64,000 nt of DNA from positions 2,522-66,521 of the forward strand of contig CBFFRP010000191.1 in assembly GCA_965644295.1 (NCBI GenBank). Direction: 5' to 3'. This DNA comes from Paraphysomonas bandaiensis. Taxonomy: Eukaryota > Protista > Chrysophyceae. The notes under the pieces are model-generated. The model was not told the DNA's origin. It saw only the letters and a program-made list of their open reading frames with translations, and ran no database searches. Positions 13,501-52,367 of this stretch are shown here, one piece after another; the first letter of the stretch is position 1, and the number at the start of each line of letters is the position of its first letter. Both the position numbers and the translations under genes were made by a program.

Positions 13501-16000
13501 TGATGAATCGGTACCTGAGAGGTCTCAGGATTATTATATAGAGAGTTGGAGGAGGCTCAAGTGGCTATAGACCCCAACAAGGCTCGCCAACCGGGTGAGT
13601 TTGAGTATCTTATCGGAAAGCACCATGAGGACGGTGGTCTGCTATACAAGACCAACAGAGTGGTGATTAGGAAGGGGCTTATTGTGGGATACTGCTCGTT
13701 GGTTGCTGGTAACCAGGTTCAAGTGGAGGATAAAACTCCTATTCACATTGCTGACATCAAGAAGATGACAGAGGATCTTGCGCAGAGGGTGGTTAGGGCC
13801 AGAGTTACTGACAACCGTGACGGTGGTATCAGCGAGCGGAGTGGTGCCACAGCAGTCGGAAAGTGGGCAGGTGCAGCCCCAGGCTGACTCAGCATCACCT
13901 TTTGGGGAACGGACCCCTGCCGAGAACCATCCGCACGGCAAACGCGCAAGAACTCCAAGGACGGTAACGAATGTGTCGGTGTTAGGACAAATCCATCATT
14001 TGAGTGATGAGAGTGATGAGAGTGATGTGAGTGACCTTTTACAGGAGGCAGACTCAGTGTGGATGTCAGCGGAAGAGTCGACAGTGCCTCAGACACATCG
14101 TGAGTCCTTGGAGAGTGGCGAGCACAGGGAGTGGAGACGAGCTCGCGGTGTAGCGAAGCGAGACACCATGGAGGTGACTCGTATACCGGACGGAGTCGTC
14201 CCACTGCACTCCAAGTACGTCTATTGAAAGAAGTACGATAAGGAGGTAGAGGTCCGCCGATATAAGTCTCGTCCTGTAGCAATGGGTTGTGGACAACAGT
14301 CGAGTGGTTGGGCGAACCAGTTCGCTCCCGTTGTTAAGGGGGTAACACAGTGCGACTGGTAATTGCCATAGCCTTCGTGATCAACTGCCTGAGGAGTACT
14401 GCTTTAAGTTGAAGAAGTCGTTATAATACGGGCTTCGGAGTTCCCCGCGGTCGTGGTGGAAAACATTGGATAAATTCATACGATCTAATAAACCATGTGT
14501 ATTAGACCCGTGTTTGTATTATCAGTATAAGGGCGATGAATTGGTATTATTAACGATATATGTGCATGATATCAACATAGTGAAGGATATTATAAAGCTC
14601 AACTGTGTGCCCGGTTTGATATGAAGGACATGGGCGAGATGGAACATTTTCTGAATGTTCGAGTCACAAGGACGCCAGAGTATATTCGTCTTGACCAATC
14701 AGTATATGCGGCTAAGATCTTAGAAAAGTTTGAAAAGTATCTTGGGTCACCGCGAAAGGTACGGAAGAGTCCTCTACCGGCGGAAGCAATGGATTTAGTG
14801 GCAAAAGGGGCGCGGCATGAGCATACCGAGGATGAACACAGCTTATAGTATATAACTTCCCATATCGGGCGCTGATAGGTGCATTACTATATATATCGAT
14901 GAACACGAGGCCGGATATTGCCTATGCAGTGGGAGTACTGTCTCGGTTCAGTAATAAGGTGAATATTGAAGTAGGCAAGCTATTAACGCACGTATGACAA
15001 TATATTCGTGGTTATTGACAAAGCGCTTCAATATGGGAGTAGACGGTTCGACTTCCATATGTTTACTGACGCGGATTGGGCGGGAGACCAGCTGTCCAGG
15101 AAGTCCACGTCGGGGTACGTTGGGTTTGCAGCGGGAGGGCCTATAGTCTGACAGTCCAAACTGCAGACGACAGTGGCAACGTCAAGCATGCAGTCTGAGT
15201 ATCAGTGTATTTACTCGGGTCTCCAAGAAGTGCTATGGGTTCGGGGAGTGACGGGTGAGATTAAGTTGAGGCTCATCAAACCTACACCATTCTTCATCGA
15301 CAGTCAGAGTGCCCAGGATATGGCCGAAAACCCAGTGTTTCACAAGAAGTCGAAACACATTATTATTGAGATTAAGTATCACATGGTGAGAGAGCATGTG
15401 GATCCTAATCAGTTCAATACAATTAAGTTAGTGCATGTGCATACACCGCAACATGCAGCAGATATTTATACAAAGTCACTGGTTGGTTTATCATGCATGG
15501 AGCAGAGAAAGAGAAATCTTGGAGAGAAAATTAAGAGTTCCACTGAAGTGATTAATGAGGGACCAAGAGATAAAAGAAAACGCAAGTAGGTACTGAGTTT
15601 TTTTAAACAGAGGTTTAGACTTAGAGATGAGTCTATTTTACTGTCAAGAATTTTTATCTCAGGCATTCAATAGCTAGGAGGCGTCATGGTACAACACTCA
15701 ATTGAGGGGGAGTGTTAAGATCTGAAGATTCTATATACTTGCAATTGAGTGCAGTATTATGTGAGATGCAAGGATCGAAAGATATATATGTAATTAGTAC
15801 ATTATTATATTGTGTAGTATGAAACTGAAGTAGAAGTGGGTGACTATACAGGATACGATCACTGAGTGTGTGGTTTGTACATTATAGTAGTAAATGAATG
15901 GTGTTGAACACATCGAATACAACTTAGGTTCTTTATCATGTAATGTTTATAATTTCATCCTATCAATTGAGAATAGCAAACCTTAGCAAATAATGTCAAC
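10556..16000 (+). mobile_element. Degenerate Ty1/Copia LTR retrotransposon (Copia-1), 5' LTR missing
   Basis: Fragmented gag-PR-IN-RT-RH homologous to 47270-51874 (PELNAVSERKFRT, DADWAG, KHI.IKYH). PPT TTGAGGGGGAG at 15702-15712 followed by LTR start TGTTAAGA at 15713. LTR right end is uncertain. Confidence 0.85.
12280..13030 (-). mobile_element. Retroposon copy D, body type 2, inserted in Copia-1 integrase
   Basis: 12-bp TSD TACGACACTTAT (12268-12279, 13031-13042). Shares the 3' tail with copy A and the body with copy E. Confidence 0.85.
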
Positions 16001-16160: not shown

Positions 16161-16374
16161 GACGAATCCTAATAGCTGGCGATACATAAAAACTTGAAAG
16201 TAGGCTTTTTTTATTCTTCTACCGATATTTATGTACATAGGGGTATATATTTTGCACCCTACAGATAAGAATGATTTCGTAAAATACTATCATAATATTG
16301 ATTGCAATACGATTGTGAGCCACTTCTACAGAAACAATACTGATGGAATATTTGACCAGTCCACCAATCAATAT

Positions 16375-17256
16375 TGTAATAACCAGCTATCAGGTTATTC
16401 TATTCTACAAGCTCTCTATTGTATATGCTTAAGTTTGTACATACCATCTGTGCAAACATAGATTGAATAATATTATTATTATTATTACCATAACTCACAC
16501 TGAGATATATGATATATTATGACTATGACAATTCATGCTTATCATTGATATTTACATAATCATTCAAAAGACAAAGAAAGACATGATTATCAATAATGAG
16601 ACATAATGATGATACTGATGATGGATGATATATATATATGTTCTTATTATATATATATATTGACTTTAAGGCTGGAGAAGTTTACTGGAGAATTCCGGGT
16701 TTGATATCCATGCTGATAGATGTGTATTGCCAGATTATCCAGTAATACAGTTATACATTACGTATTTCCTTCAGTGCTTATTGGGGATTGATTGTACTTA
16801 GGAGTACGAATACCAGGCTTCAACTACAATGAGAATACTGAATGTATCTTCCCTTATACAGTTGTAATGAGTTATTATGATCAACTGTGTTAGACTGATG
16901 TGTTTGGTATTGAATATGAATGATGTTCATTCCATTGATCACGGAATCGTAGGTAGACATATTTATATTATTGATAATAAGATGCAATTTCCTTACTCTT
17001 GAAATTGCTGGTAGATAGCATTGTAGTTGTAGACACATATTTGTTCATTGTGATTTGATTATATTGTTATTATTATGGAGGAGGAGACTCTTGATAGCGC
17101 ACAAGAGTCTACTAAATTCGAGTCAGTGAGAAGGACCCTCAGGCTTATGCTTGGAGGGTTAGACCCTTCCATTGCCAATGCCAGTGAGGATCAAATCCGG
17201 GATATAGGCTTGGCATTTGGGTTGTCCGAGATCGAATCAGAGACGTTGGTGTCTCA
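16375..17256 (+). repeat. 5' LTR (882 bp); contains the gag ATG and first ~61 codons
   Basis: Constant offset of 9407 to the 3' copy; no difference seen by eye; internal ORF translations are identical in both copies. Confidence 0.9.
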
Positions 17257-20200
17257 ATTTTTTAAGGAAATTTCATCTCTCAATAAACAAAGTGACGACT
17301 TTAGAGAGACAGAAACTCATGAAGCAGACAGTCAAGCAACGACTGTTCCAGAACTGGTGGATCGTCTTAGTAGTCCGGAGGAGGTACCCTTGTCAGCCCG
17401 AAAACCTCTCGCATTCGGTAAGGACGCTATTCAACCATTGAGGGCTCAGGATGATTTTTGTTCGTTTGATGCAGATGCGACAGGAGATAGTCCATTACAT
17501 ATGGACCCCTTGCCATTCAAGGAACAAAGTAACAAGGAGGCTGAGGCAAAGGAGTGTCATTATACACCCTTACCTCACGCAGGGGATGAGGCACACAATG
17601 TGCTACATTCCACCTCTGGATTGCAAGGTGTATATAACACCAGCAGACCAGACCAACTAGGTAGAGATGCAGATAGGTGTCAAATCTGTCAGCGACTCAC
17701 AGATCCCAAGCGTCTCACCGCTGGAGGAATATGTTATTATTGCTCGGAAAATCAATGTATTGATTGTAAGGACCAGGTAAATTCAATGGAAATTCAGGGT
17801 GGTCTATGTTATCGATGCCGAGTAAGAAGGGGGATACTCAGATCAAAGAGACCCACCACAGACACTTTAGAGAAGTGCATAATATTGGGCCATAGAAGAT
17901 TGCGTCCTCGGCCAGACCTAAACGAGGACACATATATGGAGCATTTGTACCTGGATCGTGGGGCTAGAGACCCTATGGACCTAAAGATTTCTCTTGACAT
18001 CCTGCAACAGTACGCAGATCGACGGAGGGTGCATACCACCAGATGGTCAAAACAGCGATACACCGCTCATATAGCAGAGCCACTGCAGCATTGGGAGCAG
18101 CAGATTTACATGGCTTGTACAGCTACTGAGGTCACTGATCGTTTACAGGACCACTTTTTTGAGCAAATGAAAATAGCAAGAGAGAGTTCTGCGGAAGATA
18201 TTTCTCAGCTTGCCCAACTAGTCTTAAATCGAGGAAACGGCTTGCAATTACCATCAAATGTTCGCGAGTGGTTAAGTAGGCTGACAGTTCTTGACAATGT
18301 ACATGAGTTAGTGGCTGAAGAGCACATTTACGAAACAGCGGAATTGTGCATGGTGCTGAACCAATACCTTGATATAAGAGACATGGCTGAAACTATGTGG
18401 GAGGAGGCCGATAGCCAACTAATGATGCGCTGCAATCTCCTCAGCAAACAACTCAGTCAGCAAAATAAAAAATTTGGATCTTGGGAAGAGAGGACCGTTG
18501 ACTCTGACGATGAGTCATACCACTCCTTCGTCAGCAATGGTAGTCGGGGTTCCTTTGTCAGCAGAGGAAGTCGGTCAGCAGATACCAGATCAAGTACATC
18601 CCGAGTGTTGAGTTCTAGGGGTTCAAGATCGAATTCCCGTATTTATCCAACTGAAGATGGCAGACTGCTAGACGCACAAGCATTCGGGTGTCACCTTCAA
18701 CAAATTGGAGAGCAACACTGGTCACTGCTCTGTAACCAAATGCGATCGTCTAGAGCCATGCGGTTAATGTCTAAAGCATTGCCCAAAGCTACTCCATGGA
18801 GAAGAGAAGTCAAGGAGCCTACTCTCTACATGAAGACTGATGACAAGATGCGTCTAGAGAAAGATCAATCTAATCGATACCCCATTGAACGAGGACTCCG
18901 TTTTGCTGTCCAGAAGGCACGTCAGGCCAAGATGGGGCTGAAAGATCTGGTCATACAGACGAAGAATGGTTGGTGTTTTAAGGGCGGCTTTAAAGAGGAA
19001 CTGCAACGGTTGTCTTTGAATCGTGTGCCAGAGATATGGGATGACCAGGAGGATAGCCAATTAGCCACTGAATATGAATTTTGGATGCGTCGTTGGGTGC
19101 ATTTCTGCCATTGGGCTATCCGTAATTATTGTCCCGTACAGACCAATGAACAGCGTGCCAAACAGATTGAGGACTGGGCTGCTCCTGATCTCGCTACGCC
19201 TACAGCAGTTATGCAACTATATTATGAACTAAAAGAGGTAGTTGAACATAATACGCCGGATTGCCAGACGGCACAGGTGATGGAAGAATCGATGCGCCGA
19301 GTGGTAGGAAAAGAGCCTGTTTGGGGTAAATCGTTGGTTGCAGCGTACGACAATAAGATCACAAAAATTGAAAGGGCGAAGTCGACTGAAAATTGGAGTC
19401 TATCATGGGAGGAGGTAGAATCAATCTGGCGAGAGATTCAGGAAGAATTCCAGCAGGGAACGCTGCTATACATTATACGTCCTGATGTCCAATCTAGTAA
19501 ACAACCAGACACAACTAAGGGTGAGGGTGGCTTACGACGACATCACAAAGTTCATGCCGGCATACGCGAGGAACCCAAACCATCTCTCACACCGATTGAG
19601 ATTGCGAAGCTTACATGTTCACGATGTGGCCTTCGACATAGTATTAACAACGCTCAATGCCGGCGCATCACGAATGGGAAATTTGACCCACTTGGATTTG
19701 TGTCTGAGACACCACGTAACATTGAAAGGAATCGAATATACAATTTTTGGTTGTCCAGATTGAATAAGTATAGCCAACCTTGGTCTCAGTTGCCTACGGC
19801 TCAGAAGGAGGAATTTCAGGCAGCATTTCGGGATTTGACTAGCCGGTGGGATGGAGGGAGTGCTTTGCATACGACATTCATTGGTGGCGAACGGAAGAAA
19901 TCTAATTCCATAGCATCAAGTGTTTCTAGTACACCACAAGTACATTGGGCGGATAGTGATGATGACTCTTCTTTCTCTACACTGGATGACTCTATACCTG
20001 CTCACAGTACAGACTCACTTTCCGGTTCACGATCTACTAAGTCAAAATCAAAACCCAAACGAAAGGTTCATGCTGCACAAAAAGTTCGATACTTAGTGCA
20101 CACTGTGACACCTAGGGATGAATCTCAAGATACATTATCCATGTTTCGTGTTCTATATGATACAGTTGATGAAACTGGTAAACCAGTACAGAGAGTCGGT

Positions 20201-21145
20201 TGGCACCAGGTGGATCATGGCTCTATGGAGTCCTTGATCGACGAAGAGTGTGCAGCCCTCTTGAATCTTAAGCGAGTACGAATCCCAAAGAGAGACCGGT
20301 ACATTATTCGGGGAATAGGTTCACACGATATCGCTGTGAGTTGGAGAGCTTGTCTTACCTACACTGTTACTGCACAACGGGTCTTACCTGTGGCAGTGTT
20401 GCCGGGAGAGGCACCACTTTTGAACAATGCAAGGGAACAAGTTCAGTTGAAAGCATGGATACCAATTATCCCGAATTGTTCCATGAATGTAATCTTTGGA
20501 GGGCATGCATTACGACGTATCAAAATGATTGACTTGTTTGATCATAAACTGCTGTTGTTCCAAACTAATGGTATTCAGTATGCAATGCCTCAATTCAACT
20601 GGAATGAGACTGTTACGCAAATGGCATCAGCTCAGGACCCTGTGGTACAGAAATGTGTTGCACGCCATCTCCGTGAAAACAAACCTCAACCTCACAAGGC
20701 TGCAGTCTGCATATCGAAACATATCCCACCGCATTCTAAGATGCGGATTCCTGTTCAAGTGGGCAAGGGTGCTCCGTTAGGTGGATGGATACAGACTCTG
20801 CCAGAGGTTGCAAGGATTAATTCAGGTGATGATGCTAATGAGCCCGTCTTACAATTTGAAGATGCTATTTGTACGGCGAACAGACCTTATATATGGGCTT
20901 CTAATCATACCGATGATTGGATCCATCTACCGGGTAGACCGCGTTTAGTTGTACGACTTCAACCCATATTATTGGGGATGCAGGTTCATAATCAGGAGAC
21001 GGTGGAATCTGCTATGAATGGCAGTGTCGAGACGGAGGATACCGCTATCATGCCTACTGATGACAAATTCCAGCATTCAGATATTTCTATGTTATCTGAA
21101 GAGAATCACGAAAATGTCACTAGGCTGGTGTCCTCATCGAAATGA
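17075..21145 (+). CDS. gag: Gypsy ORF1: Gag-like region + aspartic protease + dUTPase-like spacer
   Basis: 1356 aa. N-terminal Cys cluster, CCHC-like knuckle CSRCGLRHSINNAQC, protease-like VDHGSMESLI...VIFGGHAL, and post-protease IPPHSKMRIPV...SNHTDDWIHLP spacer. Confidence 0.8.
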   Translation: MEEETLDSAQESTKFESVRRTLRLMLGGLDPSIANASEDQIRDIGLAFGLSEIESETLVSQFFKEISSLNKQSDDFRETETHEADSQATTVPELVDRLSSPEEVPLSARKPLAFGKDAIQPLRAQDDFCSFDADATGDSPLHMDPLPFKEQSNKEAEAKECHYTPLPHAGDEAHNVLHSTSGLQGVYNTSRPDQLGRDADRCQICQRLTDPKRLTAGGICYYCSENQCIDCKDQVNSMEIQGGLCYRCRVRRGILRSKRPTTDTLEKCIILGHRRLRPRPDLNEDTYMEHLYLDRGARDPMDLKISLDILQQYADRRRVHTTRWSKQRYTAHIAEPLQHWEQQIYMACTATEVTDRLQDHFFEQMKIARESSAEDISQLAQLVLNRGNGLQLPSNVREWLSRLTVLDNVHELVAEEHIYETAELCMVLNQYLDIRDMAETMWEEADSQLMMRCNLLSKQLSQQNKKFGSWEERTVDSDDESYHSFVSNGSRGSFVSRGSRSADTRSSTSRVLSSRGSRSNSRIYPTEDGRLLDAQAFGCHLQQIGEQHWSLLCNQMRSSRAMRLMSKALPKATPWRREVKEPTLYMKTDDKMRLEKDQSNRYPIERGLRFAVQKARQAKMGLKDLVIQTKNGWCFKGGFKEELQRLSLNRVPEIWDDQEDSQLATEYEFWMRRWVHFCHWAIRNYCPVQTNEQRAKQIEDWAAPDLATPTAVMQLYYELKEVVEHNTPDCQTAQVMEESMRRVVGKEPVWGKSLVAAYDNKITKIERAKSTENWSLSWEEVESIWREIQEEFQQGTLLYIIRPDVQSSKQPDTTKGEGGLRRHHKVHAGIREEPKPSLTPIEIAKLTCSRCGLRHSINNAQCRRITNGKFDPLGFVSETPRNIERNRIYNFWLSRLNKYSQPWSQLPTAQKEEFQAAFRDLTSRWDGGSALHTTFIGGERKKSNSIASSVSSTPQVHWADSDDDSSFSTLDDSIPAHSTDSLSGSRSTKSKSKPKRKVHAAQKVRYLVHTVTPRDESQDTLSMFRVLYDTVDETGKPVQRVGWHQVDHGSMESLIDEECAALLNLKRVRIPKRDRYIIRGIGSHDIAVSWRACLTYTVTAQRVLPVAVLPGEAPLLNNAREQVQLKAWIPIIPNCSMNVIFGGHALRRIKMIDLFDHKLLLFQTNGIQYAMPQFNWNETVTQMASAQDPVVQKCVARHLRENKPQPHKAAVCISKHIPPHSKMRIPVQVGKGAPLGGWIQTLPEVARINSGDDANEPVLQFEDAICTANRPYIWASNHTDDWIHLPGRPRLVVRLQPILLGMQVHNQETVESAMNGSVETEDTAIMPTDDKFQHSDISMLSEENHENVTRLVSSSK

Positions 21146-21160
21146 GTAGACGGCAAAGAG

Positions 21161-24100
21161 GTGAATCGGCCACCTCCGGAGCCACCGCCTGTTAACATAG
21201 CCGATACGACTTCGGATTGTCCACGACCGGAGTCAATCCCTGTGGAATTATGGAATTTAGTGGATTTGTGTCAGCGAAATTCAGTTCAACCACGATTTGA
21301 CAAGTACACTCCTGACCGTCTTCAAGAGTGTATTGAACTGATTTTAACTAAGCTGGATATATATAAGGATGATGAAGCAGTCTCGTTGCAAGGGGAGATT
21401 TCTATCGACGCGGATACTATAGCTTCACATCATAATGAACGTGATTATTTTTTGGCTCAAGCTTTGGCCAATATTGATGTTTTCTGTTTTCCTGATCCCG
21501 ATAACCCTCCACGGATTAAGGATTATAAAGTGAGTATTGAAACTACTGATGAAGTTCCGGTTCGGGCGCGACCTCGGAAATATTCTTTATTGCAACAAGC
21601 ATTTTTAGAGGCTAAAACTGGTATGATGCTTCGTCAGAAAAAGCTTCAACCCTCAAACAGTGATTGGAGCCATGGTTTAGTTCTGGTTCCTTATCATGAC
21701 CGTATTCAGAAATTTTTAGATAAATGGGGAGACACGGCACATTTAGAAATCTTCAAAAAGGTTAATTGGCCTGAAGTGGCCACATTTTTTCGGATGTGTT
21801 CAGATGTCCGATCGCTCAATCAGAAAACTAAGGTAGATATTTTTCCACTTCCCAGGATTGATGACTTGCTAGATAGCATTCCTGTGGGAACTGACCGGTT
21901 TTCAGCGGGCGATATTGCTGATGCATTTTTCTGTGTGGAGCTTGACGCTGATAGTCGATTTAAAACGGCATTCCGCACTCATAACGCTCATTTACAGTAT
22001 ACGGTGATGTTACAAGGCTGGGTCAATGCACCTTCACACTTTAGTAGAGTCATTGCCCAGACTTTTGAAGACATGGATCGGTTTCAAGTCTCTGCATACC
22101 TGGACGATGTGCTTAACCATACTGGGGGTTTTCGTGCACATTTCCTGACACAGCAGTCCATATACGATAGACTTCGAAATCGTCATCTTACATTTAAAAT
22201 TGAAAAGACTCATATTAATTATCGGGAGCTGCGGTTCCTTGGACATATTCTGTCCAGAAACGGCCGATGCCCTGATCCGAAGAAGGTTGAGGCGATTACA
22301 AATCTTGCAGACCCAGAGGACGTTACGGCTGTTCGATGTTTTTTAGGAAGTACTTCATTCTACCGTCAGTATATTCCTCAATACGCAGACGTTGCGTTGC
22401 CTCTGTATGACTTGACGAAGAAAAATGTCAACGTGAAGAAACTCTGGCGCCCAGAGATACACGGCCATGCCATGGAGAGGCTTAAAGAGGCGCTGCGGAA
22501 GGCTCCTGTGCTTCGTTACATTGATAATTCTAAACCGTTTGTCATTCACCTGGATGCTTCCAAGACAAAGCGTGGTATCGGTGGGGTTCTCATGCAGCAT
22601 GATGACGCAGGGCAGCTCCATCCGGTGGAATATTTCAGTCGTAAGTTAACTCCTGCTGAACGAAATTACTCGGCCACGGATTTGGAATGTAAGGCCCTCA
22701 GGGATGTTATTCTCCATTGGCATATTTATCTGAGTAGTGGTCGTAAATTTGAAGTCCACTCTGACCACAATTGCCTGAAATATATGGTCCATTCAGTGAC
22801 TGCAACACTTAATCCACGATTGCTGGGATACCTCATGGATCTTCAATCATATCGTTTTGCTTTACATTACAAAAAAGGGGTGGAAAATGTAGTTGCTGAT
22901 ATGTTAAGTCGCCTTTGGCAAATAGGGGATGTACCGCCAGCTACTAGGGAGGAGCTCTCCGATCATCTCGGGCCGGTGGTTGATAATGAGGATCCAGACC
23001 TCATCCGATCATGGGGGGCTGCAAAACGACAGTTGAGTAAATTGAAACGCCAAGCGGTTGTGGAGGCGCAAACTATTAAGAAAACTCATACTTGCTCTAG
23101 CAAATTTGAGGTTCAAATCTGTAATTGTGATGCGCTGGATTTGGATTTGTTGTCTTCTTTGACTAATGTCAAGAAAGGGGGAGTATTAGGGGAAAGTTCA
23201 GAATTAGAAAATTCTGAAGTTAGATTTAAAGTGGCTGGCTCTACATTAAAAAGAAGGAAGCAGCCGAGCATCGATGTAGAACAATATAGTTGCCAGGTTG
23301 AGAATCTACTTAAAGAATTGAATATTACGGAAGTTCAGGAAACTGGTGAGTCAAGGATGAAATTCAGCAATTCGGGACAGAATATACAACATGCAACTGC
23401 ACACTCGAACCGAACTAGCTTTCATCCATCTCGAACAAACTATATGGATAATCCAGATGAGTCAGAAGATATGAAGTTAATTCGAGAACGACGAATTTCT
23501 GGTTACAATCAATGTACTATTCTTCCATCGACAAAGCTAAAAGCAGGATGGGGACTTTTTGCCACCAAACAGATCTGTCCAAATGTTGAGATTTGTGATT
23601 ATGTGGGTCCGGTTGTATCTGAAGGAGTGGATCAATTAAGCTCCAATTATGGGATGCAGATGATTGCTGGAGCACATCGTAAGATTGTTTTTGATGGATG
23701 GGAACCTGGTTCAAGCTTAGGTCGATATGCGAATGATGGGATATCCAAACAATTGATTAATGCGAAATTGATATGGAAAAAATCTAAAGGAGTTTTGATG
23801 GCTCTTAGAGAGATCTTGCCTGGGGATGAAATATTTTTTGACTATGGTAAAGAATTTTGGAGTACTAGAAGTGATCAACTTAGTCCAGAAGATAATCAAA
23901 TTCTGAATTTAGATGGATCTCGACGGAAGACTACCGTGTCTTTTAAAGATGAATTTGAGTTAATTGTGTACGATCAAAAACGGAAAGTTCAGGAGAAACT
24001 ATATTCCAAAATCTTTAAGTACAGCGATGAAGAAAATTCCAGAATCCAGGAACTTGTTGAGATGGAGGAACGAAATACTAGGAATTTCGAGAGAACTCTC

Positions 24101-25726
24101 CGATATCTAGAAACCGACGCTTTGGAGAAGTACTCTTATGAGAACCTAGTACAATGCCAATCACTTGCTGACGAATTGCAATATCTGGTAGGCAGAAAGT
24201 ATATTGATGACGATAATTTCCAAAAATATGAGATTGCTTCAATACATTATGATGAAACGCATAAGTTAGTGGTTGGTCATAGGAGGCCTTTGTCAGGGAA
24301 ATTGGATAGATATGATACTCACCCATTCGCCGTATGTGGAGAATCTGGATTATGGGAGTTATCAGATCAATATTTATTAGATCATCCGGAAGTAGATCCG
24401 GAGATTAAGTGGCCTTCGAGTAGAGAGAGTATGTTTCAGATCCAAGAAAATGATACTCAACTGGGATTGATTATATCACAGTTATCAAATTTTGAAACTG
24501 GCCATGAGTTAGAAGTGGATGGTCATGATTACAAGTTACATGAGAATGCAGATGAACCATCGCACAAGATACTATTGAGAAAACATGTTCAGAAAAACAA
24601 GGGATCGATAGATTGGCAAATTATGGTCCCTCAGGTGTTACGTTTTCAACTAATGAAGTATTTCCATGAAGGATATACGCATCCAGGAACACAACGAATG
24701 CTTGAAACTTTGAAATTGAGATATTTTTGGCCGTCAATACGCAAGGATGTACAGAAACATGTGGAGGAATGTATACCTTGTAAATTACGTAAGACCTATC
24801 AAACGCGACCAAAGATTCCAATAATGAAATACCCTGATGCAAAATTTCCTTTGTCACGAATACATATTGATTTAACAGGAAGATTGGTGAAAACCAAAAG
24901 TGGTTTCAGTTATATTCTAGTGGTAAAGGATTTCCTTACTAAATTTGTTTGGCTTATGCCTCTTAAGAACAAGACGCCTTTGGAAGTGGCTAATGCTTTG
25001 ATTACTCATGTGTTTTGTCCATTTGGGTTACCAGAATTACTGGTGAGTGATAAAGGCACAGAGTTTGTCAATAAACTGACCAAAGCAATATCCAAGTTAT
25101 TCAAGTATAGAAGGATTAACACTACTCCTTATACTCCAAGGAGCCAGGGTTTAGTTAAGAATCACAACAAGACGTTGAAGGATCAGTTGTACCATTTTGT
25201 AGGTGTATTACAGGATGACTGGGATACATTTTTGCCTACAGTACAATTGATGTATAATACTACAGTGTCCTCGAGCACAAGTTTTACTCCATATTATATG
25301 ATGTTCGGTAGAGAATGCCGTTTACCATCTATAGAGTTTACATTGTCCTCGAAACTTTCCGAGCTTCGATTACAACCTGGAACTATTGAAGCTGAATGGA
25401 TAGATAATTTGTTGATTTCTTTGGAACAAGCTTGGAATTATGCAACGAAGAAAGCTCAAAAGAATCATCTCCGACATAATATGGTATCTAGGCGACCTCG
25501 AGAGTTCAAAGAATATAATGCTGGTGATTTATTCTTCAGAATTCGACGTCCAATTAATGTGTTTAAATCGGCTGATGATGAGGAGTTGTATAAAATCAAT
25601 GCCAAATTACAAGCTAGATTTGAAGGACCTTATAAAGTTATTCGGCGACTAAGTCCAATACTTTATGATGCTGAAATTGAAGGAAAAGAGGTTCGAATAA
25701 ATGCTACTAATATGAAGCCATTTTAG
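21161..25726 (+). CDS. pol: Gypsy ORF2 Pol: RT - RNase H - SET domain - novel domain - integrase (same frame as ORF1, one TGA between)
   Basis: RT FPLPRIDDLL and YLDD; RH LDAS, SDH, NVVADMLSR; SET GWGLFA/DYVG/RYAND/GDEIFFDYG; IN H-H-C-C, HIDL, SDKGTEF, FEGPY. Confidence 0.93.
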   Translation: MNRPPPEPPPVNIADTTSDCPRPESIPVELWNLVDLCQRNSVQPRFDKYTPDRLQECIELILTKLDIYKDDEAVSLQGEISIDADTIASHHNERDYFLAQALANIDVFCFPDPDNPPRIKDYKVSIETTDEVPVRARPRKYSLLQQAFLEAKTGMMLRQKKLQPSNSDWSHGLVLVPYHDRIQKFLDKWGDTAHLEIFKKVNWPEVATFFRMCSDVRSLNQKTKVDIFPLPRIDDLLDSIPVGTDRFSAGDIADAFFCVELDADSRFKTAFRTHNAHLQYTVMLQGWVNAPSHFSRVIAQTFEDMDRFQVSAYLDDVLNHTGGFRAHFLTQQSIYDRLRNRHLTFKIEKTHINYRELRFLGHILSRNGRCPDPKKVEAITNLADPEDVTAVRCFLGSTSFYRQYIPQYADVALPLYDLTKKNVNVKKLWRPEIHGHAMERLKEALRKAPVLRYIDNSKPFVIHLDASKTKRGIGGVLMQHDDAGQLHPVEYFSRKLTPAERNYSATDLECKALRDVILHWHIYLSSGRKFEVHSDHNCLKYMVHSVTATLNPRLLGYLMDLQSYRFALHYKKGVENVVADMLSRLWQIGDVPPATREELSDHLGPVVDNEDPDLIRSWGAAKRQLSKLKRQAVVEAQTIKKTHTCSSKFEVQICNCDALDLDLLSSLTNVKKGGVLGESSELENSEVRFKVAGSTLKRRKQPSIDVEQYSCQVENLLKELNITEVQETGESRMKFSNSGQNIQHATAHSNRTSFHPSRTNYMDNPDESEDMKLIRERRISGYNQCTILPSTKLKAGWGLFATKQICPNVEICDYVGPVVSEGVDQLSSNYGMQMIAGAHRKIVFDGWEPGSSLGRYANDGISKQLINAKLIWKKSKGVLMALREILPGDEIFFDYGKEFWSTRSDQLSPEDNQILNLDGSRRKTTVSFKDEFELIVYDQKRKVQEKLYSKIFKYSDEENSRIQELVEMEERNTRNFERTLRYLETDALEKYSYENLVQCQSLADELQYLVGRKYIDDDNFQKYEIASIHYDETHKLVVGHRRPLSGKLDRYDTHPFAVCGESGLWELSDQYLLDHPEVDPEIKWPSSRESMFQIQENDTQLGLIISQLSNFETGHELEVDGHDYKLHENADEPSHKILLRKHVQKNKGSIDWQIMVPQVLRFQLMKYFHEGYTHPGTQRMLETLKLRYFWPSIRKDVQKHVEECIPCKLRKTYQTRPKIPIMKYPDAKFPLSRIHIDLTGRLVKTKSGFSYILVVKDFLTKFVWLMPLKNKTPLEVANALITHVFCPFGLPELLVSDKGTEFVNKLTKAISKLFKYRRINTTPYTPRSQGLVKNHNKTLKDQLYHFVGVLQDDWDTFLPTVQLMYNTTVSSSTSFTPYYMMFGRECRLPSIEFTLSSKLSELRLQPGTIEAEWIDNLLISLEQAWNYATKKAQKNHLRHNMVSRRPREFKEYNAGDLFFRIRRPINVFKSADDEELYKINAKLQARFEGPYKVIRRLSPILYDAEIEGKEVRINATNMKPF

Positions 25727-25781
25727 GTTCGCAGTGAACTTCGTTCCGCATACTGGCGTATGCGACTGCTGGAGGGGGTAG

Positions 25782-26663
25782 TGTAATAACCAGCTATCAG
25801 GTTATTCTATTCTACAAGCTCTCTATTGTATATGCTTAAGTTTGTACATACCATCTGTGCAAACATAGATTGAATAATATTATTATTATTATTACCATAA
25901 CTCACACTGAGATATATGATATATTATGACTATGACAATTCATGCTTATCATTGATATTTACATAATCATTCAAAAGACAAAGAAAGACATGATTATCAA
26001 TAATGAGACATAATGATGATACTGATGATGGATGATATATATATATGTTCTTATTATATATATATATTGACTTTAAGGCTGGAGAAGTTTACTGGAGAAT
26101 TCCGGGTTTGATATCCATGCTGATAGATGTGTATTGCCAGATTATCCAGTAATACAGTTATACATTACGTATTTCCTTCAGTGCTTATTGGGGATTGATT
26201 GTACTTAGGAGTACGAATACCAGGCTTCAACTACAATGAGAATACTGAATGTATCTTCCCTTATACAGTTGTAATGAGTTATTATGATCAACTGTGTTAG
26301 ACTGATGTGTTTGGTATTGAATATGAATGATGTTCATTCCATTGATCACGGAATCGTAGGTAGACATATTTATATTATTGATAATAAGATGCAATTTCCT
26401 TACTCTTGAAATTGCTGGTAGATAGCATTGTAGTTGTAGACACATATTTGTTCATTGTGATTTGATTATATTGTTATTATTATGGAGGAGGAGACTCTTG
26501 ATAGCGCACAAGAGTCTACTAAATTCGAGTCAGTGAGAAGGACCCTCAGGCTTATGCTTGGAGGGTTAGACCCTTCCATTGCCAATGCCAGTGAGGATCA
26601 AATCCGGGATATAGGCTTGGCATTTGGGTTGTCCGAGATCGAATCAGAGACGTTGGTGTCTCA
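25782..26663 (+). repeat. 3' LTR (882 bp)
   Basis: Preceded by the PPT and followed by TSD ATAT. Confidence 0.9.
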
Positions 26664-44768: not shown

Positions 44769-45541
44769 GAAAGAGGCCTATATAGTCGTGTATATAATAT
44801 ATATACATATATTTGATTGTCCTGGTAGTAAAGGTTGAGGAAACGATTTAATTGTATAATACATGATTTATTGCTGTCATACTAATTACCTAAATCTCCC
44901 CAATACCTTTGGAACTGGGACAGTTAATACGATGATCAACTGTTGGCATATTGCTTACATGTCAGACATACTTATAGTCAACATTATTTTTATTACAACT
45001 CTACGGTTACGGAACTCGACACACACCAGTGTGGTGCTGAAGCCCTGTTCTAACGTGTCTTGCTATATATTATTAGGCCTTCTTATCCTTCATGTGAAGT
45101 TCATATAATCAATCTTTATCTCTAATAATACGAAGTGTACCATTACTGAATATTAGAATATGGATCTTATTCTAGTATATTCAGTATGTCACTTGAAGAC
45201 AGTGTACGAGAATACAGTGAAATATAGTGATTGTTGAGTTCTGCAATATGATGTGATATATATTGTGCAATTGAAGTGAGTTAACAGTGTGCAATAGGTA
45301 AAGTCAACTCATAGGTGTAACGGGTGATTATAGTTACAAAGAAGGAATTAAATTCAGTTACTGATGTGTGACTATACAAGATATAGAACTGACTGATGAA
45401 CATATGATAAACAGATGTTGCTATAAGAACAGATGTTTCAACATATGTTACACGAATATGTAGTGAAGTGTTCAGAATAATAATCATAATTTCTTACTTG
45501 ATTGAAAGTGCATTGTGTTCAACAGCAAGGTTAAGGTTTAC

Positions 45542-47185
45542 ATTCTCTGCCCTACGATGGCAAATACAGTCCAACATAAAGTTTCACCCTATTAACCAGC
45601 TCCAAGCCCAATGTCTCTATTGAGACCGTGGCTGAGTCACATCAGTGTGCCCAGGGCCTTTTACACTCCCTTACTGCTGCATTTTGTTGACCACCACGCT
45701 TCCGACAAATTACCTGTCACACCATGTTGTACACGCTCCAAGCCCCCCTGCCTGGCCTTGCAACCTTCACCCTACTCAACTACTTCAGTTAAACCACGTG
45801 CCTGCACCAATGCAGCGCTGACCGCACCTATGTGCTATCCCCTCAGCAGACAACTTCGTCTCACCCATCGCTTTCTACGGCTACAACCTCTCAGAACATG
45901 GCTCGTGCGAGCAGGCTCACGAAAACGACCCCCATGGACCCCCTATGCAATCACTGAATACTCTCGATCCCTCTCAACTGTGCAACAGGGCTGCCTTCTG
46001 CCGCCCACTCAACCCAACCCAACATGATTTGTCTGTACCCCCTCACCCTGTTCACCTATCACCCCCACAGCCCATCCATCTCATTGGATAGACACTGTAT
46101 TCCGCATACGGTATACTCGACTACTGTACTACTGTGTCCTACAGGATGTATACCATTCCGTGTATACCTCTACTGCTGTTGGACACATCACCATGTCCAT
46201 GTACCTGTCTACCTGTACTGTTGGACACATCACCAGCTCTCTCTCCCTGTCCAACACACTCATAACACCACTGCAGTGTCATACACACACACAGTACACT
46301 TACCTCCTCCTAGAAAACCCCCGGACAAACTATCTCCCCTCCCTTCGTCTCTGATACCTTGCCGTCATCTTCCTTCCACACATACTCTATGCCTCAGCCT
46401 GTACCCCCCTGCACCAACACAGACACTAACAAGGGCAGCTGAGGACGTCCGAGTGTCTCCTCCAGACCATCATCATCATCACGATCATCTCGTGCATAGG
46501 GCTATCAGAGTACTCGACCTCAGTGACTCTTGTTCTGTTGCGCAGTCTCACTCTCCTCAATCAGATGTTGCCTCTCTTGCACCATCACACTCCCTCTCGA
46601 CTCCCTGTAGCTGGACACACCGGATGACCCTCACATCCCACCCCTGTACAGCTATACACCCTCTTGCATGTGTTCTCTACCGCTGGCTAAGACAGCAAAA
46701 GAGCCGATTTCGACGCTTCTTCACAGTAGGCCATAACCTTTTGCAAGACCTTCATCCACATACCTCCGAGCCACTTGGAACAATGCCTAAAGGAAGGCCA
46801 CCAGATCGCCAATCTCAGAAGGGCATATTACTGTTTCCCCTAACTGCCATAAGGCTAATAAGTCAGTCCCCGTGAGGTACATAAGGCTATCTATCATATA
46901 GCGAGTGGAGTCTCATCCCAAGAGGAGACCTCCAGATCACACGCGCCGGTGAGTCCCAGGACACACGATCATGGCGAGCCTCATAACACACACTAAGAAC
47001 GGAAGTGGTTGCACCTTGGTGCTTGCGGCGACGCACAAGCAGCTTCTGTAGCGTTAAATAGTAGGATAAAAGAGTTTGTATTGATTAGTTACGGGTAGTA
47101 GTCTAACTAGTATGACTAGCATTCTTCTAGCCACTAATTGGTGCAGGCTTTCAACGCCTATTGCTAAATAATCAGACATTCAATA
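45542..47185 (+). mobile_element. Retroposon copy E, body type 2, inserted in the Copia-2 5' LTR
   Basis: 10-bp TSD TAAGGTTTAC (45532-45541, 47186-47195), single-copy in the 3' LTR; shared 3' tail. Confidence 0.88.
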
Positions 47186-48739
47186 TAAGGTTTACGTGTA
47201 GAGCAAAGTTAACTTCAGTGAAATGTCCTATGTTAACATGGTAGCGAGTGGTAGCACTGAAGAGACGAAGGAGGACAGCAAGGTGCTGAAGTTCGACAAG
47301 TACTAGGCCGAGGCGTCTGCTCAGAAAATAAAGATTCATCTGATGAAGAAAAATCGGAACCATCTGGGGTTAGAGCCGAAACCTGCTGGAGGAGGCAGAG
47401 CACAAGAATTATGGCATGAGCGAAATGACACGTGTGTTGCAACGATTAGGGAGGCTTGTGAACATGACGCTGATGTATTAGAGGTTGCCAATCAATACAT
47501 GGAGGCGAAGGCGTTACTTCCAGATGATGATCCCAAAATAAGGAAGTTTTGTCCAATGAAATGCTTCAGACGCTGGTGGATAGGTTTAGGGGTGAGTTGT
47601 GAAATGTACTCGAGAAGACTACAGCGGAATACCATAGCTTTAAAATTAGAGCCAATGAAAAGGTCGCTATTGGTATTGATAGGTTGAATGGGATAATACA
47701 GAAATTGACTAAGTTGGGACAATCGCCAACCGAGGAGAGCAAGCTCGCCAAGATCAAAAAGTCCATACATACTCCAGAGCTGAAGGAGTTGTGGTTAGCT
47801 ATTGCAATGCTGCCTAAAGCAACGACCACGTATCAGATAGTTAAAGACGCGTGCGAAGAATTCGATGAGGCTAAAAACGACAACTGGAGGAGTTCGAAAT
47901 TGACAAACAAGGAGAACAGGTCAATATGCTCGGACCACAAGGAGGTGTGGAGAATGTCAAACGCTCATTCTGTATGAAAAAAGGGCATACTGCAAGTGTG
48001 TGTCGTGTCAAACACAAAAATAAAATTTTCCAGAAGTTCAAGCGAAATGGGAAGGCTAAAGCAAAGAATATGAGGAAAGGAGCGCAACAAGTGGGTTCAG
48101 AAGCATATACAGGGTGTTTTCATTGTGGTAGCAAAGAACACAAGGCTGCTGAGAGTGTAAAAGAGGGAACAAGAGGAAGATCGATAGGAAATATGAGAAA
48201 AAAGGCTCCAAGAAGGTTAAGAAGAGTTCATCAGTGGGGTGGTCCAAATACGTAGATGATGACGTTTCATCTGGAGAGGAGACCAACATGATAGATGGTG
48301 AAGTATTTCTGACTGAAACTGGAGATGAACGAGTGTACCTGGATAGTTGTGTGCTGGAAAGCAGTTGTTTATCGTCAAGGATGATAGAGTGCTGGAGAAG
48401 TATGTAGAAGAGCCGGGAGTAATATCACTGACCAAAAAGGGATCGGCGATGGAGATCCAAGGAGTGGGAAGTTTTCAGCAGTGGCGCGGCATCAAAGTAT
48501 GTAATGATGCAGTGAAGAATATTGTCTCTGGAGGTATGCTGCGGGCTATAAGTCGAGGTAATACCAAAACCTGGGTTTTGATGTAAAACCTGGTAAGTAG
48601 TACTGTTCATGAAGATGGTGACGGGGTCGTCGTAGGTATATATGCGGTATTGTTCTGATTATTGTTGTGTGCTGTTACTATAATACACTGTACTAACTGT
48701 GTAGTATAATGGTGTAGGAGAAGTACAAAGGGAAGAAGA

Positions 48740-51700
48740 ATGTCGTCGAAATTCGTGGCGACATATCCAACGACGACTCGGAGGAAGAGGTACCACGAAA
48801 GCTCACGAGCAGGGACAGTAGTACTGTTCATGAAGATGCTGATCAAGGGAACAGGGCTACAGCGACATCATTTATCTAAGACTACCAAAAAGAAGTGTGA
48901 GACCAGTTTGTGCAAGTGGTGTGCTAAGGCGAAGATCACTAGGCATGCATTTCGAGGACAAAGTGACCAGAATGTGGAGATGAAGGCGACAGCATTCCTG
49001 GAGCGTATTACAGTGAATATTTCGGTTTATATGAATTGTCCATCTGTGGAGGGGTATAAGTACGCACTTGTATTTGTAGATACGGCTACGAAAGAATTCT
49101 GGGAATACGGTCTACGAACGAGAACTGGGGATGAAGTGTTAAAATGCGTGAAGCATCTCTGTGAAGTCAGGCTACCAAAATACCCAGGGTGGAACAGGAT
49201 ACAGCAGTACCATGCTGATGGTGGACCAGAGTTGATGGACAGGCGAATTAAAGAATACTTGTTACAAAAATTTGGAACCACATTCTCCTACACTACTAGG
49301 GAGACACCAGAATTAAACGGTGTTTCAGAACGGAAATTCAGGACACTAGGAGAAATGACATTATCACTTTTATTGTCATCGGGTATGCCAAAAGCAGAGT
49401 GGTGGAAAGCCTTTAGACATGCATGCTGGGTTCTTAGGAGATTACCCACAAAGACCTATAGAGGTTGGATGTCACCCTACGAGTGTGTTCCTGGAGGAAC
49501 GGTGCCAGATTTTTCTTGGTTACGGAAATGGGGGTGCAAGGCGTACGTTCTCATCCCGAAGGCAGATCGCAGGAAAGACTGGGAAGAAAAGGCACAGACT
49601 GGATACTTTGTAGGGTTCCCAGAGGAGCAAATGGGATACCAAGTATTGATTGGAGATACTATAGTTACGTCTGTGCATGTTTTATTCGATGAATCTGTGC
49701 CTGAGAGATCGGCGGATTATTATCGAGAAATGGACGAGGCCATGGTTGCTGTGGATCCTCAGGAAAGAAATATTAGAGACTTCGATTACTTAATCGGAAA
49801 GACCCATGAAGATGGCGGCCACCTATACAAGACCACACGAATATTGGTTCGAAAAGGTTTGATTGTAGGGTATAGATCCCTATTGTCTGGTGGTGCGGAG
49901 CAAGTGGAAGATAAGACTCCTATTCACATCGCCGATATACAGCGGATGAGTGAAGACCTTGCAACAAGAGTATCTGCAAGTTCTGGATCTCGTGACGACG
50001 GGACCAGCGGACATTTATCACAGCAGTTGACTGGGACGGTTCCATCCCCTTCTGACTTCGTAAGTGCTCCGGGAGAGGAAGCTCCATCAGATCGCTCATC
50101 AAGGGGCAGGCGTGCAAGGGCTCCAAGGGTGGTGACGAATGTGTCAGTTTTGGGTGAGATGCATTTATTGTCGTCATGTGTCGAAGACGAGTGCAGCCTA
50201 TTACAGGAGGCAGATTCCATCTGGTGCTCGTCAGCGGGACCTAAGGTGCCTCAGACATATTCCGAATCCTTGGAGTTGCCGGAACGGAAGCAATGGAGTT
50301 CAGCAAGACAAGCTGAACGTGACGGTTTAGAACGTAGGGGAGTCATGGAAGTTAAGCCCATCCCTACCGGGGTCACTCCATTGAAATCTAAGTATGTTTT
50401 CGCCTTGAAACGCAACAAAGAGGGTGCGATTCAACGATATAAGGCAAGACTTGTGGTACTTGGATGCGGAGACCATGAAGGTGGCAGAGCCAACAATTAT
50501 GCTCCAGTGGTAAAAGCGGTAACAGTGAGATTGCTTTTAGCAATCGCTTTTGTTATGAATATGGTGGTGCATCAACTCGACGTATCTAATGCATTTTTGT
50601 ATGCAGATATACAAGGAGATGTGTATATGTATGCTACACCAGATTTTAAATTGCCACCAGGACACTGCTTTAAACTGAAGAAAAGTTTATATGGTCTTCG
50701 AAGCTCACCACGGTCATGGTATAAATGTCTTAATAAGTTTATTAAGTCCTTGCATTTTATATCATGTATACTTGACCCATGTTTATATTTTACACGGATC
50801 AGGGGTGAATTAGTTCTGTTAGTAATATATGTAGATGATATGCTGATAGCATGTCGAGATACGAGTATTATTTTGGAAATTAAGCGACGAGTATGTGAAA
50901 GGTTCGATATTACAGATATGAATGAGATTGGCCAGTTTTTGAACGTGAGAGTGACGAGAACTCAGAATTGTCTCAAACTTGACCAAACAGTGTACATCAA
51001 AAAGATATTGGCGAAGTATATGGATTTTCTGGGTCCAAGGGACAAGACTCGGCGATACCCACTACCTAGTGATGTCATGGATAGGATCAAAGTGGGAGTG
51101 GAACATGTGCATTCGACTGAAGAGCAGGAATTAGTTGACAATTTTCCCTATCGTCCACTAATAGGAGCGTTACTTTATTTATCTATGAATACAAGGCCGG
51201 ATATATCATATGCAGTGGGAGTATTGTCACGATTCTCAACGAAAGTGAATATCACTGTATGTAAACTAATGATACATTTAATGCAGTATGTACGAGGTAC
51301 TACGGAAAAAGGCATTCAATATAGAGGGAAAGATTTTGATCTTCATATGTTCACGGATGCTGACTGGGCGGGTGACCCGTTGACGAGGAGATCAACTTCA
51401 GGTTATGTTATGTTTGGAGCTGGTGGACCACTATCGTGGGGTTCCAAACTTCAGTCTACTGTAGCTACATCGACTATGCAAGCAGAGTATCAATGCTTAT
51501 ATAATGGATTACAGGAAATGATATGGTCTCGGGGGGTGACTGGTGAAGTAGGATTGAAAATTGACGAGCCCACACCATTATTCCTGGATAGTCAAAGTGC
51601 TCAGGATATATCGGAAAATCCAGTGCAACATCAACGATCGAAACATATTGAGATTAAGTATCATATGATTAGAGAGCATGTGGATCCCGAACAGTTTAAT

Positions 51701-51874
51701 ACAGCGAAATTAATTCATGTGAGCAGTCGACAACAGATGGCTGATATATATACCAAGGCTTTGAGTGGTCCAATATTCATTGAACAGAGGGAGCGAAATC
51801 TTGGGGAAAAATTTAAGACTACTGCACAAATTATCGCAGAGGTACCCAAGGTAAAGAGAGTTCGTCGTAACTAG
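48740..51874 (+). CDS. pol: Copia Pol fragment: integrase - novel domain - RT - RNase H
   Basis: CKWC, HADGGPEL, PELNGVSER, YKARLV, QLDVSNAFL, YVDD, DADWAG, KHIEIKYH. First integrase Asp reads Asn (TVNIS vs TADIS in Copia-1). Confidence 0.93.
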   Translation: MSSKFVATYPTTTRRKRYHESSRAGTVVLFMKMLIKGTGLQRHHLSKTTKKKCETSLCKWCAKAKITRHAFRGQSDQNVEMKATAFLERITVNISVYMNCPSVEGYKYALVFVDTATKEFWEYGLRTRTGDEVLKCVKHLCEVRLPKYPGWNRIQQYHADGGPELMDRRIKEYLLQKFGTTFSYTTRETPELNGVSERKFRTLGEMTLSLLLSSGMPKAEWWKAFRHACWVLRRLPTKTYRGWMSPYECVPGGTVPDFSWLRKWGCKAYVLIPKADRRKDWEEKAQTGYFVGFPEEQMGYQVLIGDTIVTSVHVLFDESVPERSADYYREMDEAMVAVDPQERNIRDFDYLIGKTHEDGGHLYKTTRILVRKGLIVGYRSLLSGGAEQVEDKTPIHIADIQRMSEDLATRVSASSGSRDDGTSGHLSQQLTGTVPSPSDFVSAPGEEAPSDRSSRGRRARAPRVVTNVSVLGEMHLLSSCVEDECSLLQEADSIWCSSAGPKVPQTYSESLELPERKQWSSARQAERDGLERRGVMEVKPIPTGVTPLKSKYVFALKRNKEGAIQRYKARLVVLGCGDHEGGRANNYAPVVKAVTVRLLLAIAFVMNMVVHQLDVSNAFLYADIQGDVYMYATPDFKLPPGHCFKLKKSLYGLRSSPRSWYKCLNKFIKSLHFISCILDPCLYFTRIRGELVLLVIYVDDMLIACRDTSIILEIKRRVCERFDITDMNEIGQFLNVRVTRTQNCLKLDQTVYIKKILAKYMDFLGPRDKTRRYPLPSDVMDRIKVGVEHVHSTEEQELVDNFPYRPLIGALLYLSMNTRPDISYAVGVLSRFSTKVNITVCKLMIHLMQYVRGTTEKGIQYRGKDFDLHMFTDADWAGDPLTRRSTSGYVMFGAGGPLSWGSKLQSTVATSTMQAEYQCLYNGLQEMIWSRGVTGEVGLKIDEPTPLFLDSQSAQDISENPVQHQRSKHIEIKYHMIREHVDPEQFNTAKLIHVSSRQQMADIYTKALSGPIFIEQRERNLGEKFKTTAQIIAEVPKVKRVRRN

Positions 51875-52367
51875 ATAGAGGTGAATGAATGGTGGGAGCT
51901 AGCTATACCAGCGGAGTCATACGTCCACCAGTGTCCTATGAGGTTCGGTGGTTGCGTATCCGATAGCAATGTTCTTCACAAATTTTAGAATGGTTAACTA
52001 CATCCAATTGAGTGGGAGTGTTGAGTTCTGCAATATGATGTGATATATATTGTGCAATTGAAGTGAGTTAACAGTGTGCAATAGGTAAAGTCAACTCATA
52101 GGTGTAACGGGTGATTATAGTTACAAAGGAATTAAATTCAGTTACTGATGTGTGACTATACAAGATATAGAACTGACTGATGAACATATGATAAACAGAT
52201 GTTGCTATAAGAACAGATGTTTCAACATATGTTACACGAATAATATGTAGTGAAGTGTCCAGAATAATAATCATAATTTCTTACTTGAAAGTGCATTGTG
52301 TTCAACAGCAAGGTTAAGGTTTACGTGAAGAGCAAAGTTAACTTCAGTGAGATGTCCATTGTTAACA

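Follow-up and report, generated by a model that had tools for sequence, protein, structure and literature searches.

Is an unannotated segment that lies beside the integrase in the Pol proteins of both Ty3/Gypsy and Ty1/Copia retrotransposons one domain common to the two superfamilies, and what could it do there? The locus that raises this question is a stretch of 64,000 nucleotides from the chrysophyte Paraphysomonas bandaiensis (contig CBFFRP010000191.1, positions 2,522 to 66,521), here called the window, which contains one Gypsy element and two Copia elements (Copia-1 and Copia-2). We name the segment common to the Gypsy and Copia Pols X. Judged by its sequence conservation, X is a genuine domain family, about 75-110 amino acids (aa) long, conserved and undescribed until now. 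What is new here is an integrase-linked accessory domain family, absent from Pfam and PDB, that is common to two superfamilies.

A conserved block next to the integrase

A first-pass annotation of the window had picked out X by eye in three peptides, and translation of 24176-24360, 49781-49930 and 13600-13749 gives exactly the letters it quoted. It had taken the unit to be about 55 aa; the conserved block is longer in both the Gypsy and Copia-2 Pols, although 24176-24360 does fall inside the Gypsy block. The features concerned are as follows.

21161..25726, + strand: Gypsy Pol open reading frame (ORF), 1521 aa, with reverse transcriptase (RT), RNase H, SET, X and integrase
23546..23848, + strand: SET domain, Pol aa 796-896 (Pfam SET, E 7.6e-7, 30 bits against a cut-off of 22.4)
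24089..24427, + strand: Gypsy-side X, 113 aa, structured core 24158-24382 (alignments A1/A3/A5 and AlphaFold2 (AF2) model)
24626..25138, + strand: integrase zinc-binding domain H2C2 (aa 1156-1212) and catalytic core rve (aa 1230-1326), directly downstream of X (Pfam)
48740-51874, + strand: Copia-2 Pol ORF, with X between SH3_retrovirus (aa 253-321) and RVT_2 (aa 538-760)
49496..49702, + strand: C-terminal SH3_retrovirus domain of the Copia-2 integrase, aa 253-321, directly upstream of X (Pfam)
49700..49972, + strand: Copia-side X of Copia-2, 91 aa, core 49772-49969 (alignments A2/A4/A6/A7 and AF2 model)
13546..13791, + strand: remnant of X in the degenerate Copia-1 copy, in which GYCSL replaces GYRSL

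The claim that X stands beside the integrase is borne out by the domain order, in which it lies between SET and Integrase_H2C2 in the Gypsy Pol and between SH3_retrovirus and RVT_2 in Copia-2. In the Ty3/Gypsy lineage that carries it, X precedes the integrase zinc domain by about 60 aa and usually follows SET.

We searched the 62.6-Mb, 669-contig assembly that contains the window. On the Gypsy side we counted eight full-length copies that are nearly identical, two further copies that are broken or truncated, and three divergent lineages. For these lineages identity is 43-51% in the segment (genome search) and 36-37% in the entire linker from SET to integrase. SET, the segment and integrase follow one another in this order in every Gypsy lineage of the genome. 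A block of about 95-110 aa is sharply conserved across lineages that are 36-46% identical, and is flanked by poorly conserved charged linkers. Its consensus is EKYxYDNvLQCxxLAEELQYLVGRKFiDDENGxLYEV..I.Y......V.GYRR.L.G....YDD..F.V.G..GL..LTDLY.......WP., with the conserved WP at 24410-24415 in the window. On the Copia side, 150 of 516 candidate loci were scored; these comprise at least five lineages, whose identity to the window copy ranges from 43 to 100%, and across which X is again conserved far better than its flanks. Each of them has X directly after the integrase SH3 domain, then a variable, low-complexity and disordered linker, then a conserved basic motif before the RT.

Neither Pfam hmmscan nor PDB sequence and profile searches provided a family for X (33 Gypsy-side and 10 Copia-side members; 0 matches for the PDB profile). 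A match to RNR_N in 6 of the 33 Gypsy-side members (best E 7.5e-4, 19.9 bits) was rejected as spurious, as it falls below the cut-off of 29.4 and covers only the helix and the first strands. The passages of the literature examined contain no description of X, and in those of the diatom CoDi/GyDi survey we found no mention of a chromodomain or of an additional domain of unknown function.

Homology of the Gypsy and Copia versions

The alignment made by eye between the Gypsy and Copia peptides is reproduced by BLASTP (13/42 identical), and profile comparison extends it. With hhalign, 4 Gypsy against 6 Copia sequences gave a probability of 33.6% (E 4.4e-4), 33 Gypsy sequences (alignment A5) against 10 Copia sequences (A6) gave 89.5% (E 2e-6), and A5 against 17 Copia sequences (A7) gave 92.6% (E 4.7e-7, score 40.7 over 57 columns), so that the probability climbs with alignment depth. 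The shuffled-sequence and profile check that the first-pass annotation had called for also comes out in favour of similarity: the true pair A5 and A6 scores 37.4, whereas 600 column-shuffled controls never exceed 23.7 (median about 10.5) and the reversed profile gives 13.5.

To remove the bias of a region picked by eye, we compared profiles of whole Pols (6 Gypsy versus 11 Copia). The integrase came first (score 83.5), the match of X to X second (37.2, P 0.0077; Gypsy aa 999-1058 with Copia aa 848-904), and all the rest scored below 25. Hidden Markov models (HMMs) also recognize X reciprocally: the Gypsy HMM reaches 25.2 bits on Copia X, with 17/17 sequences positive and 13.3 for the best shuffled set, and the Copia HMM reaches 17.5 bits on Gypsy X, with 31/33 positive and 10.6 for the best shuffled set.

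The conserved positions coincide as well. Six of the eight Gypsy columns that are conserved at 90% or more fall in the aligned region (L33, G35, Y47, R65, D76 and V82), and these map to Copia columns in which 76-100% of residues are the same or similar. Column by column, the Gypsy and Copia positions pair as L33/L31, G35/G33, F/Y38 with H/Y36, D40 with D/E38, G44/G40, L46/L42, Y47 with Y/F43, [VI]61-62 with I55-V56, G/A63 with G/A57, Y/F64 with Y/F58, R65/R59, D76 with D/E71, P79/P74 and V82 with I/V77. Common descent is most likely what underlies the profile-profile comparison, the reciprocal HMM scores, the co-located conserved columns and the matching order of secondary-structure elements described below, and we consider it highly probable that Gypsy X and Copia X are homologous.

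Predicted fold

AF2 models support the view that both versions of X are built from a helix at either end and, between the two, an SH3-like small beta-barrel of four strands. The Gypsy model has a pLDDT of 86.7 (core > 93) and the Copia model one of 78.8 (core about 90); their elements, with model residues in brackets, lie in the window as follows.

Gypsy X, + strand: helix 24158-24187 (24-33); strands 24197-24205 (37-39), 24224-24253 (46-55), 24266-24289 (60-67) and 24326-24331 (80-81); helix 24350-24382 (88-98)
Copia X, + strand: helix 49772-49792 (25-31); strands 49802-49813 (35-38), 49820-49852 (41-51), 49859-49888 (54-63) and 49895-49927 (66-76); helix 49928-49969 (77-90)

Differing or disordered folds would have spoken against a common domain; instead, both models are confident and have the same element order, helix-b-b-b-b-helix. 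These elements pair one-to-one through the hhalign register, which was made without secondary structure.

The top PDB neighbours common to the two models are 6fc6, 6zn8, 6if4, 2f5k, 6bph and Spt5 KOW domains. Paired figures for them are 6.0 and 5.4 for VapX (6zn8), 4.8 and 4.9 for a trypanosome Tudor domain (6if4), 4.7 and 4.6 for the MRG15 chromo-barrel (2f5k) and 4.7 and 4.4 for RBBP1 (6bph); R67 DHFR is listed with them, as are the Spt5 KOW domains. Foldseek returned nothing at E < 0.01 for both models against PDB or for the Gypsy model against BFVD. An ESM Atlas shape search gave generic neighbours only (Rep3, phage hypothetical proteins, CAP-Gly) and an ESM Atlas feature search no usable match. 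The Tudor/chromo/SH3-like barrel proposed in the first-pass annotation is supported as far as a predicted SH3-like small barrel goes, but no sequence or profile link joins X to Tudor, Chromo or other Pfam reader domains.

Relatives of X and their domain context

An exhaustive hmmsearch with the Gypsy-side profile against 1.8 billion representative proteins yielded 75 matches at E <= 1e-3, of which 33 reach <= 1e-10. The long relatives that were checked are Ty3/Gypsy Pols or fragments with integrase or SET domains, and most carry RT, RNase H, SET, X and integrase. The exceptions are P0046 and P0077, which have no Pfam match, P0065, a low-complexity repeat protein, and P0066, which is 389 aa long. 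Word-based searches for relatives gave 6, 13 and 1 matches. The Copia version of X is present in 19 external Copia Pols, all of which, besides two MMETSP proteins, are metagenome or assembly proteins. The context of one short relative (P0066, on a 1.2-kb contig) was inspected for a host gene from which X might derive, and no such source was found.

X follows integrase rather than SET, because P0072 has X immediately before Integrase_H2C2, and P0068, a complete Gypsy Pol, has X but no SET detectable even at E <= 1. The pairing of SET with X that the first-pass annotation read as writer and reader is accordingly common without being obligate: SET stands beside X in most Gypsy Pols, but X occurs without it in P0068 and in all Copia elements.

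Two relatives have a further domain. In P0025 (aa 522-808) and P0032 (aa 472-766), which represent separate 50%-identity clusters, an Exo_endo_phos domain (APE-type endonuclease) is N-terminal to a complete Gypsy array of RT, RNase H, SET, X and integrase; this layout is either a recurrent gene-model fusion or a long terminal repeat (LTR) element with an APE endonuclease.

Origin of X

X-X similarity is far stronger than that between the integrase SH3 domains of the same two superfamilies, for which the same test gives a score of 10.5 and no alignment, compared with 40.7 for X. In addition, X lies on opposite sides of the integrase, N-terminal in Gypsy and C-terminal in Copia. Because the X-X score greatly exceeds that of the anciently homologous SH3 domains and the sides are opposite, X was probably captured or exchanged after the Gypsy/Copia split rather than inherited vertically. 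These two observations also fit the earlier suggestion of a module exchanged between the superfamilies or captured independently by them. An origin of X by duplication of the integrase C-terminal SH3 domain was considered and rejected, since the hhalign scores of A5 and A7 with the integrase SH3 blocks of either superfamily are 10-16, which is not significant.

Recent activity of the Gypsy element

The elements that bear X have transposed recently. The Gypsy element of the window is complete.

16375..26663, + strand: complete Ty3/Gypsy element with SET and X, bounded by LTRs and a target-site duplication
16375-17256 and 25782-26663: Gypsy LTRs, 882 nt with 0 mismatches, extended by script from a 300-nt repeat (16372-16671 / 25779-26078)

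This copy was recently active, because its 882-nt LTRs are identical and it is flanked by a 4-bp target-site duplication (ATAT at 16371-16374 and 26664-26667). Five other genomic Gypsy copies have 4-bp duplications of their own (CAAA, AGTC, AATA, CTAG and TTTT), and the six insertions are independent and recent. One genomic Copia Pol that bears X matches a protein of the Paraphysomonas transcriptome MMETSP1103 at 100% identity. Contigs from marine polyA metatranscriptomes (two samples) match, at 95-100%, both 24277-24569, which takes in the end of X, and the integrase region; this is suggestive of transcription of the X-bearing Gypsy.

The assignment of the window element to Ty3/Gypsy follows from the LTRs, the target-site duplication and the order RVT_1, RT_RNaseH, Integrase_H2C2, rve. 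Pfam places RVT_1 at Pol aa 210-364, RNase H at 434-564, SET at 796-896, Integrase_H2C2 at 1156-1212 and rve at 1230-1326, with no annotation for aa 900-1155 and a weak SH3_Tf2-1 match at the C-terminal end. The Gypsy Pol has no Chromo match and so lacks the C-terminal chromodomain that marks chromoviruses. SET domains of related Gypsy Pols reach a Pfam E of 1e-13, and the nearest solved chains to the Gypsy SET are EHMT2 (H3K9) and EZH2 (H3K27), at E about 3e-5. This SET reads RYANDG where an NH(S/C) motif is usual and retains an ELxFDY-like motif as EIFFDYG.

Upstream of Pol, ORF1 (17075-21145, 1356 aa) is in the same frame as Pol (21161-25726), with a single stop codon (21143-21145) between them, and the open frame directly after that stop is 1526 aa in all full Gypsy copies. 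Because frame is kept across a single stop, the arrangement suggests that Pol may be made by readthrough of the stop codon. No gag or protease match to ORF1 appears in Pfam at E <= 0.1, and the ATG listed for it falls within the 5' LTR.

Copia elements and neighbouring genes

45229..52324, + strand: Copia-2 element, with LTRs at 45229-45541 and 52016-52324 that are 96% identical

Copia-2 qualifies as Ty1/Copia by its LTRs and the order rve, SH3_retrovirus, RVT_2. With LTRs 96% identical it is older than the Gypsy copy, and its coding region is interrupted relative to full-length copies of 1551 aa. Copia-1 is a decayed copy with many frame breaks, just upstream of the young Gypsy insertion, and the two window Copia copies are 61% identical (BLASTP, E 3e-39). 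The X of Copia-1 has Cys at the Arg that is invariant in the family, as is expected in a dead copy because constraint has been lost.

The linker that joins integrase to RT is variable apart from an invariant basic motif and the TNVSVLGE that comes after it (R..R..R...N.S.LG), at aa 458-472 of the Copia-2 Pol (50111-50155); the same motif occurs at equivalent positions of L046-L051. It may comprise a nuclear localization signal and a protease cleavage region.

Host-like genes flank the elements at 27052-32427 (-), 53558-61708 (+) and 61976-63094 (+), their products being an ankyrin-repeat protein, a 2717-aa protein with leucine-rich and PT repeats and a REJ-domain protein. The elements of the window therefore sit among genes and not in a pure repeat island.

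Proposed role of X and alternative explanations

In the explanation that we favour, homologous X is carried by two LTR-retrotransposon superfamilies in Paraphysomonas and, to judge from metagenome proteins, in related marine protists; if protease cleaves as in related elements, X would be attached to the mature integrase in both layouts, and in Gypsy it adjoins the segment that precedes H2C2. There X would serve the integrase as an accessory module, tethering the intasome to chromatin, to a nucleic-acid feature or to a host factor, and this tethering would influence integration site or efficiency; candidate ligands are a histone tail, the nucleosome surface, DNA or a host protein. We infer the tethering role by comparison with chromodomains and with other targeting modules appended to integrases. 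For the whole explanation, that is, a real X family, homologous in both superfamilies, captured late and acting as an integrase-tethering accessory module, we estimate a probability of roughly 0.5. Several results weigh against it. The region was picked by eye in a 64-kb window, so a look-elsewhere discount applies, and P in the Pol-versus-Pol comparison is only 0.0077. The E value of the pairwise match (0.021 in one BLASTP comparison) is insignificant on its own, and no Copia protein appeared at E <= 1e-3 in the exhaustive hmmsearch with the Gypsy profile. The likeness of the two models is read through common neighbours and element order. Metatranscriptome contigs can include DNA carry-over. 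Finally, the six Gypsy insertions show no target-site consensus, although they are too few to reveal a preference.

If the Gypsy and Copia segments were instead unrelated small barrels, the pattern YL[VI]G...LY...[IV]VG[YF]R would have arisen by chance or convergence and been noticed through scanning many residues. Small beta-barrels do recur across many unrelated families, pairwise identity is low (26-31%), just 57 columns align with two 2-residue gaps, and single-profile hmmsearch did not cross families. This account is nevertheless already disfavoured, and we think it improbable, given an hhalign E of 4.7e-7 that strengthens with depth, scores in excess of the shuffle controls, the second rank of X-X in the unbiased Pol-versus-Pol comparison, the coincidence of the most conserved columns, the matching secondary-structure order and the structural neighbours in common.

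Other explanations accept the family and differ over its function. As a structural or nucleic-acid-binding intasome domain, comparable to the retroviral N-terminal extension or to a second C-terminal SH3, X would serve DNA binding or multimer assembly and not chromatin recognition. The position of Gypsy X before the zinc domain, where retroviral integrases have their N-terminal extension domain, agrees with this, as do an SH3-like barrel of the kind found in the DNA-binding integrase C-terminal domain, the invariant Arg and conserved basic residues (R65/R59 and R/K36-37; R47, R51 and K52 in Copia) and the presence of RNA- and DNA-binding barrels (KOW, PAZ, RimM PRC) among the neighbours. We find it doubtful nonetheless: X has no detectable relation to integrase SH3 domains (hhalign 10-16), PFV and MLV integrase chains are absent from the top 50 structural neighbours, and the majority of LTR elements do without a domain of this kind. 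It is unlikely, too, that X is a methyl-lysine reader of the Royal-family type (Tudor/chromo-barrel) forming, with the Gypsy SET, a writer-reader pair that targets integration to a repressive histone mark or spreads that mark. Aromatic residues conserved in both families (Y32/Y30, F/Y38 with H/Y36, Y47 with Y/F43, Y/F64 with Y/F58) and a conserved acidic residue in the b1-b2 loop would suit a reader, but the aromatics may be mere core residues, and 0/43 members match Tudor, Chromo, Agenet, PWWP or MBT in Pfam at E <= 10. CAP-Gly, VapX and KOW score equal to or above reader domains. Two further points agree with the aromatics: the Gypsy SET is nearest to EHMT2 and EZH2, which methylate H3K9 and H3K27, and fusions of chromatin domains, including SET, with transposable elements are documented by Grau-Bove et al. 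(doi 10.1101/2021.11.30.470311), whereas the existence of X without SET in all Copia elements and in P0068 points the other. Quite improbable, finally, is the boldest combination, in which X would belong to a new class of readers of histone marks or nucleosomes, would have passed horizontally between Ty3/Gypsy and Ty1/Copia in stramenopile hosts and, with the Gypsy SET, would write and read a repressive mark, steering the integrase into safe-haven chromatin or creating it.

Comparison with known systems

Modules appended to integrases decide where retroelements land; textbook examples are the chromovirus chromodomain and the host-factor-binding tails of the Ty1, Ty5, MLV and HIV integrases. 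The favoured explanation would make X a new integrase-appended module, found in two LTR superfamilies, on the N-terminal side of the enzyme in one and on the C-terminal side in the other, and evidence for a trade in accessory domains between superfamilies; one lineage combines it with an element-encoded SET methyltransferase in recently transposed elements. It would also offer a tractable system for retrotransposon-chromatin interaction, in that X could be produced as a recombinant protein and the chrysophyte, from a poorly studied group, has recently active, polymorphic copies. Were X only a structural spacer, the gain would be a modest one in annotation.

Among known barrels, the likeness of X to CAP-Gly (Bik1, 6fc6), the VapX antitoxin (6zn8) and Spt5 KOW is most likely one of small-barrel architecture alone. 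X has no CAP_GLY or KOW Pfam match, the biology is unrelated, and no motif of the GKNDG type, the CAP-Gly signature, is visible in A5 or A7. The comparison with Royal-family barrels (Tudor, the chromo-barrel of MRG15/MSL3 and the UHRF1 tandem Tudor domain) likewise yields no Pfam match to reader families at E <= 10. Retroviral integrases such as those of PFV and MLV have an N-terminal extension domain before the zinc-binding domain; Gypsy X occupies a similar place, but no structural or sequence match to that domain was seen and Copia X is C-terminal to the integrase.

Retrotransposons are known to capture epigenetic domains, as in chromodomain, DNMT and DAM 'EpiLTRs' (doi 10.64898/2026.05.21.726589) and in SET, PHD and Chromo fusions (doi 10.1101/2021.11.30.470311). 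Unlike those domains, X belongs to no annotated family, and the passages of these papers that were searched do not mention X or an accessory module common to Gypsy and Copia. The Gypsy element resembles these captures in having chromatin-related cargo (SET) within pol, and so fits the modular acquisition that they describe.

A further parallel is the chromovirus chromodomain of MAGGY and Tf1. X differs from it in having no Chromo Pfam match, in being N-terminal to the integrase in Gypsy, in occurring also in Ty1/Copia and in its flanking helices and different conserved signature. Like the chromodomain, it is a small beta-rich module on an LTR integrase, lineage-specific and added to a canonical Pol, in a position that suggests tethering or targeting.

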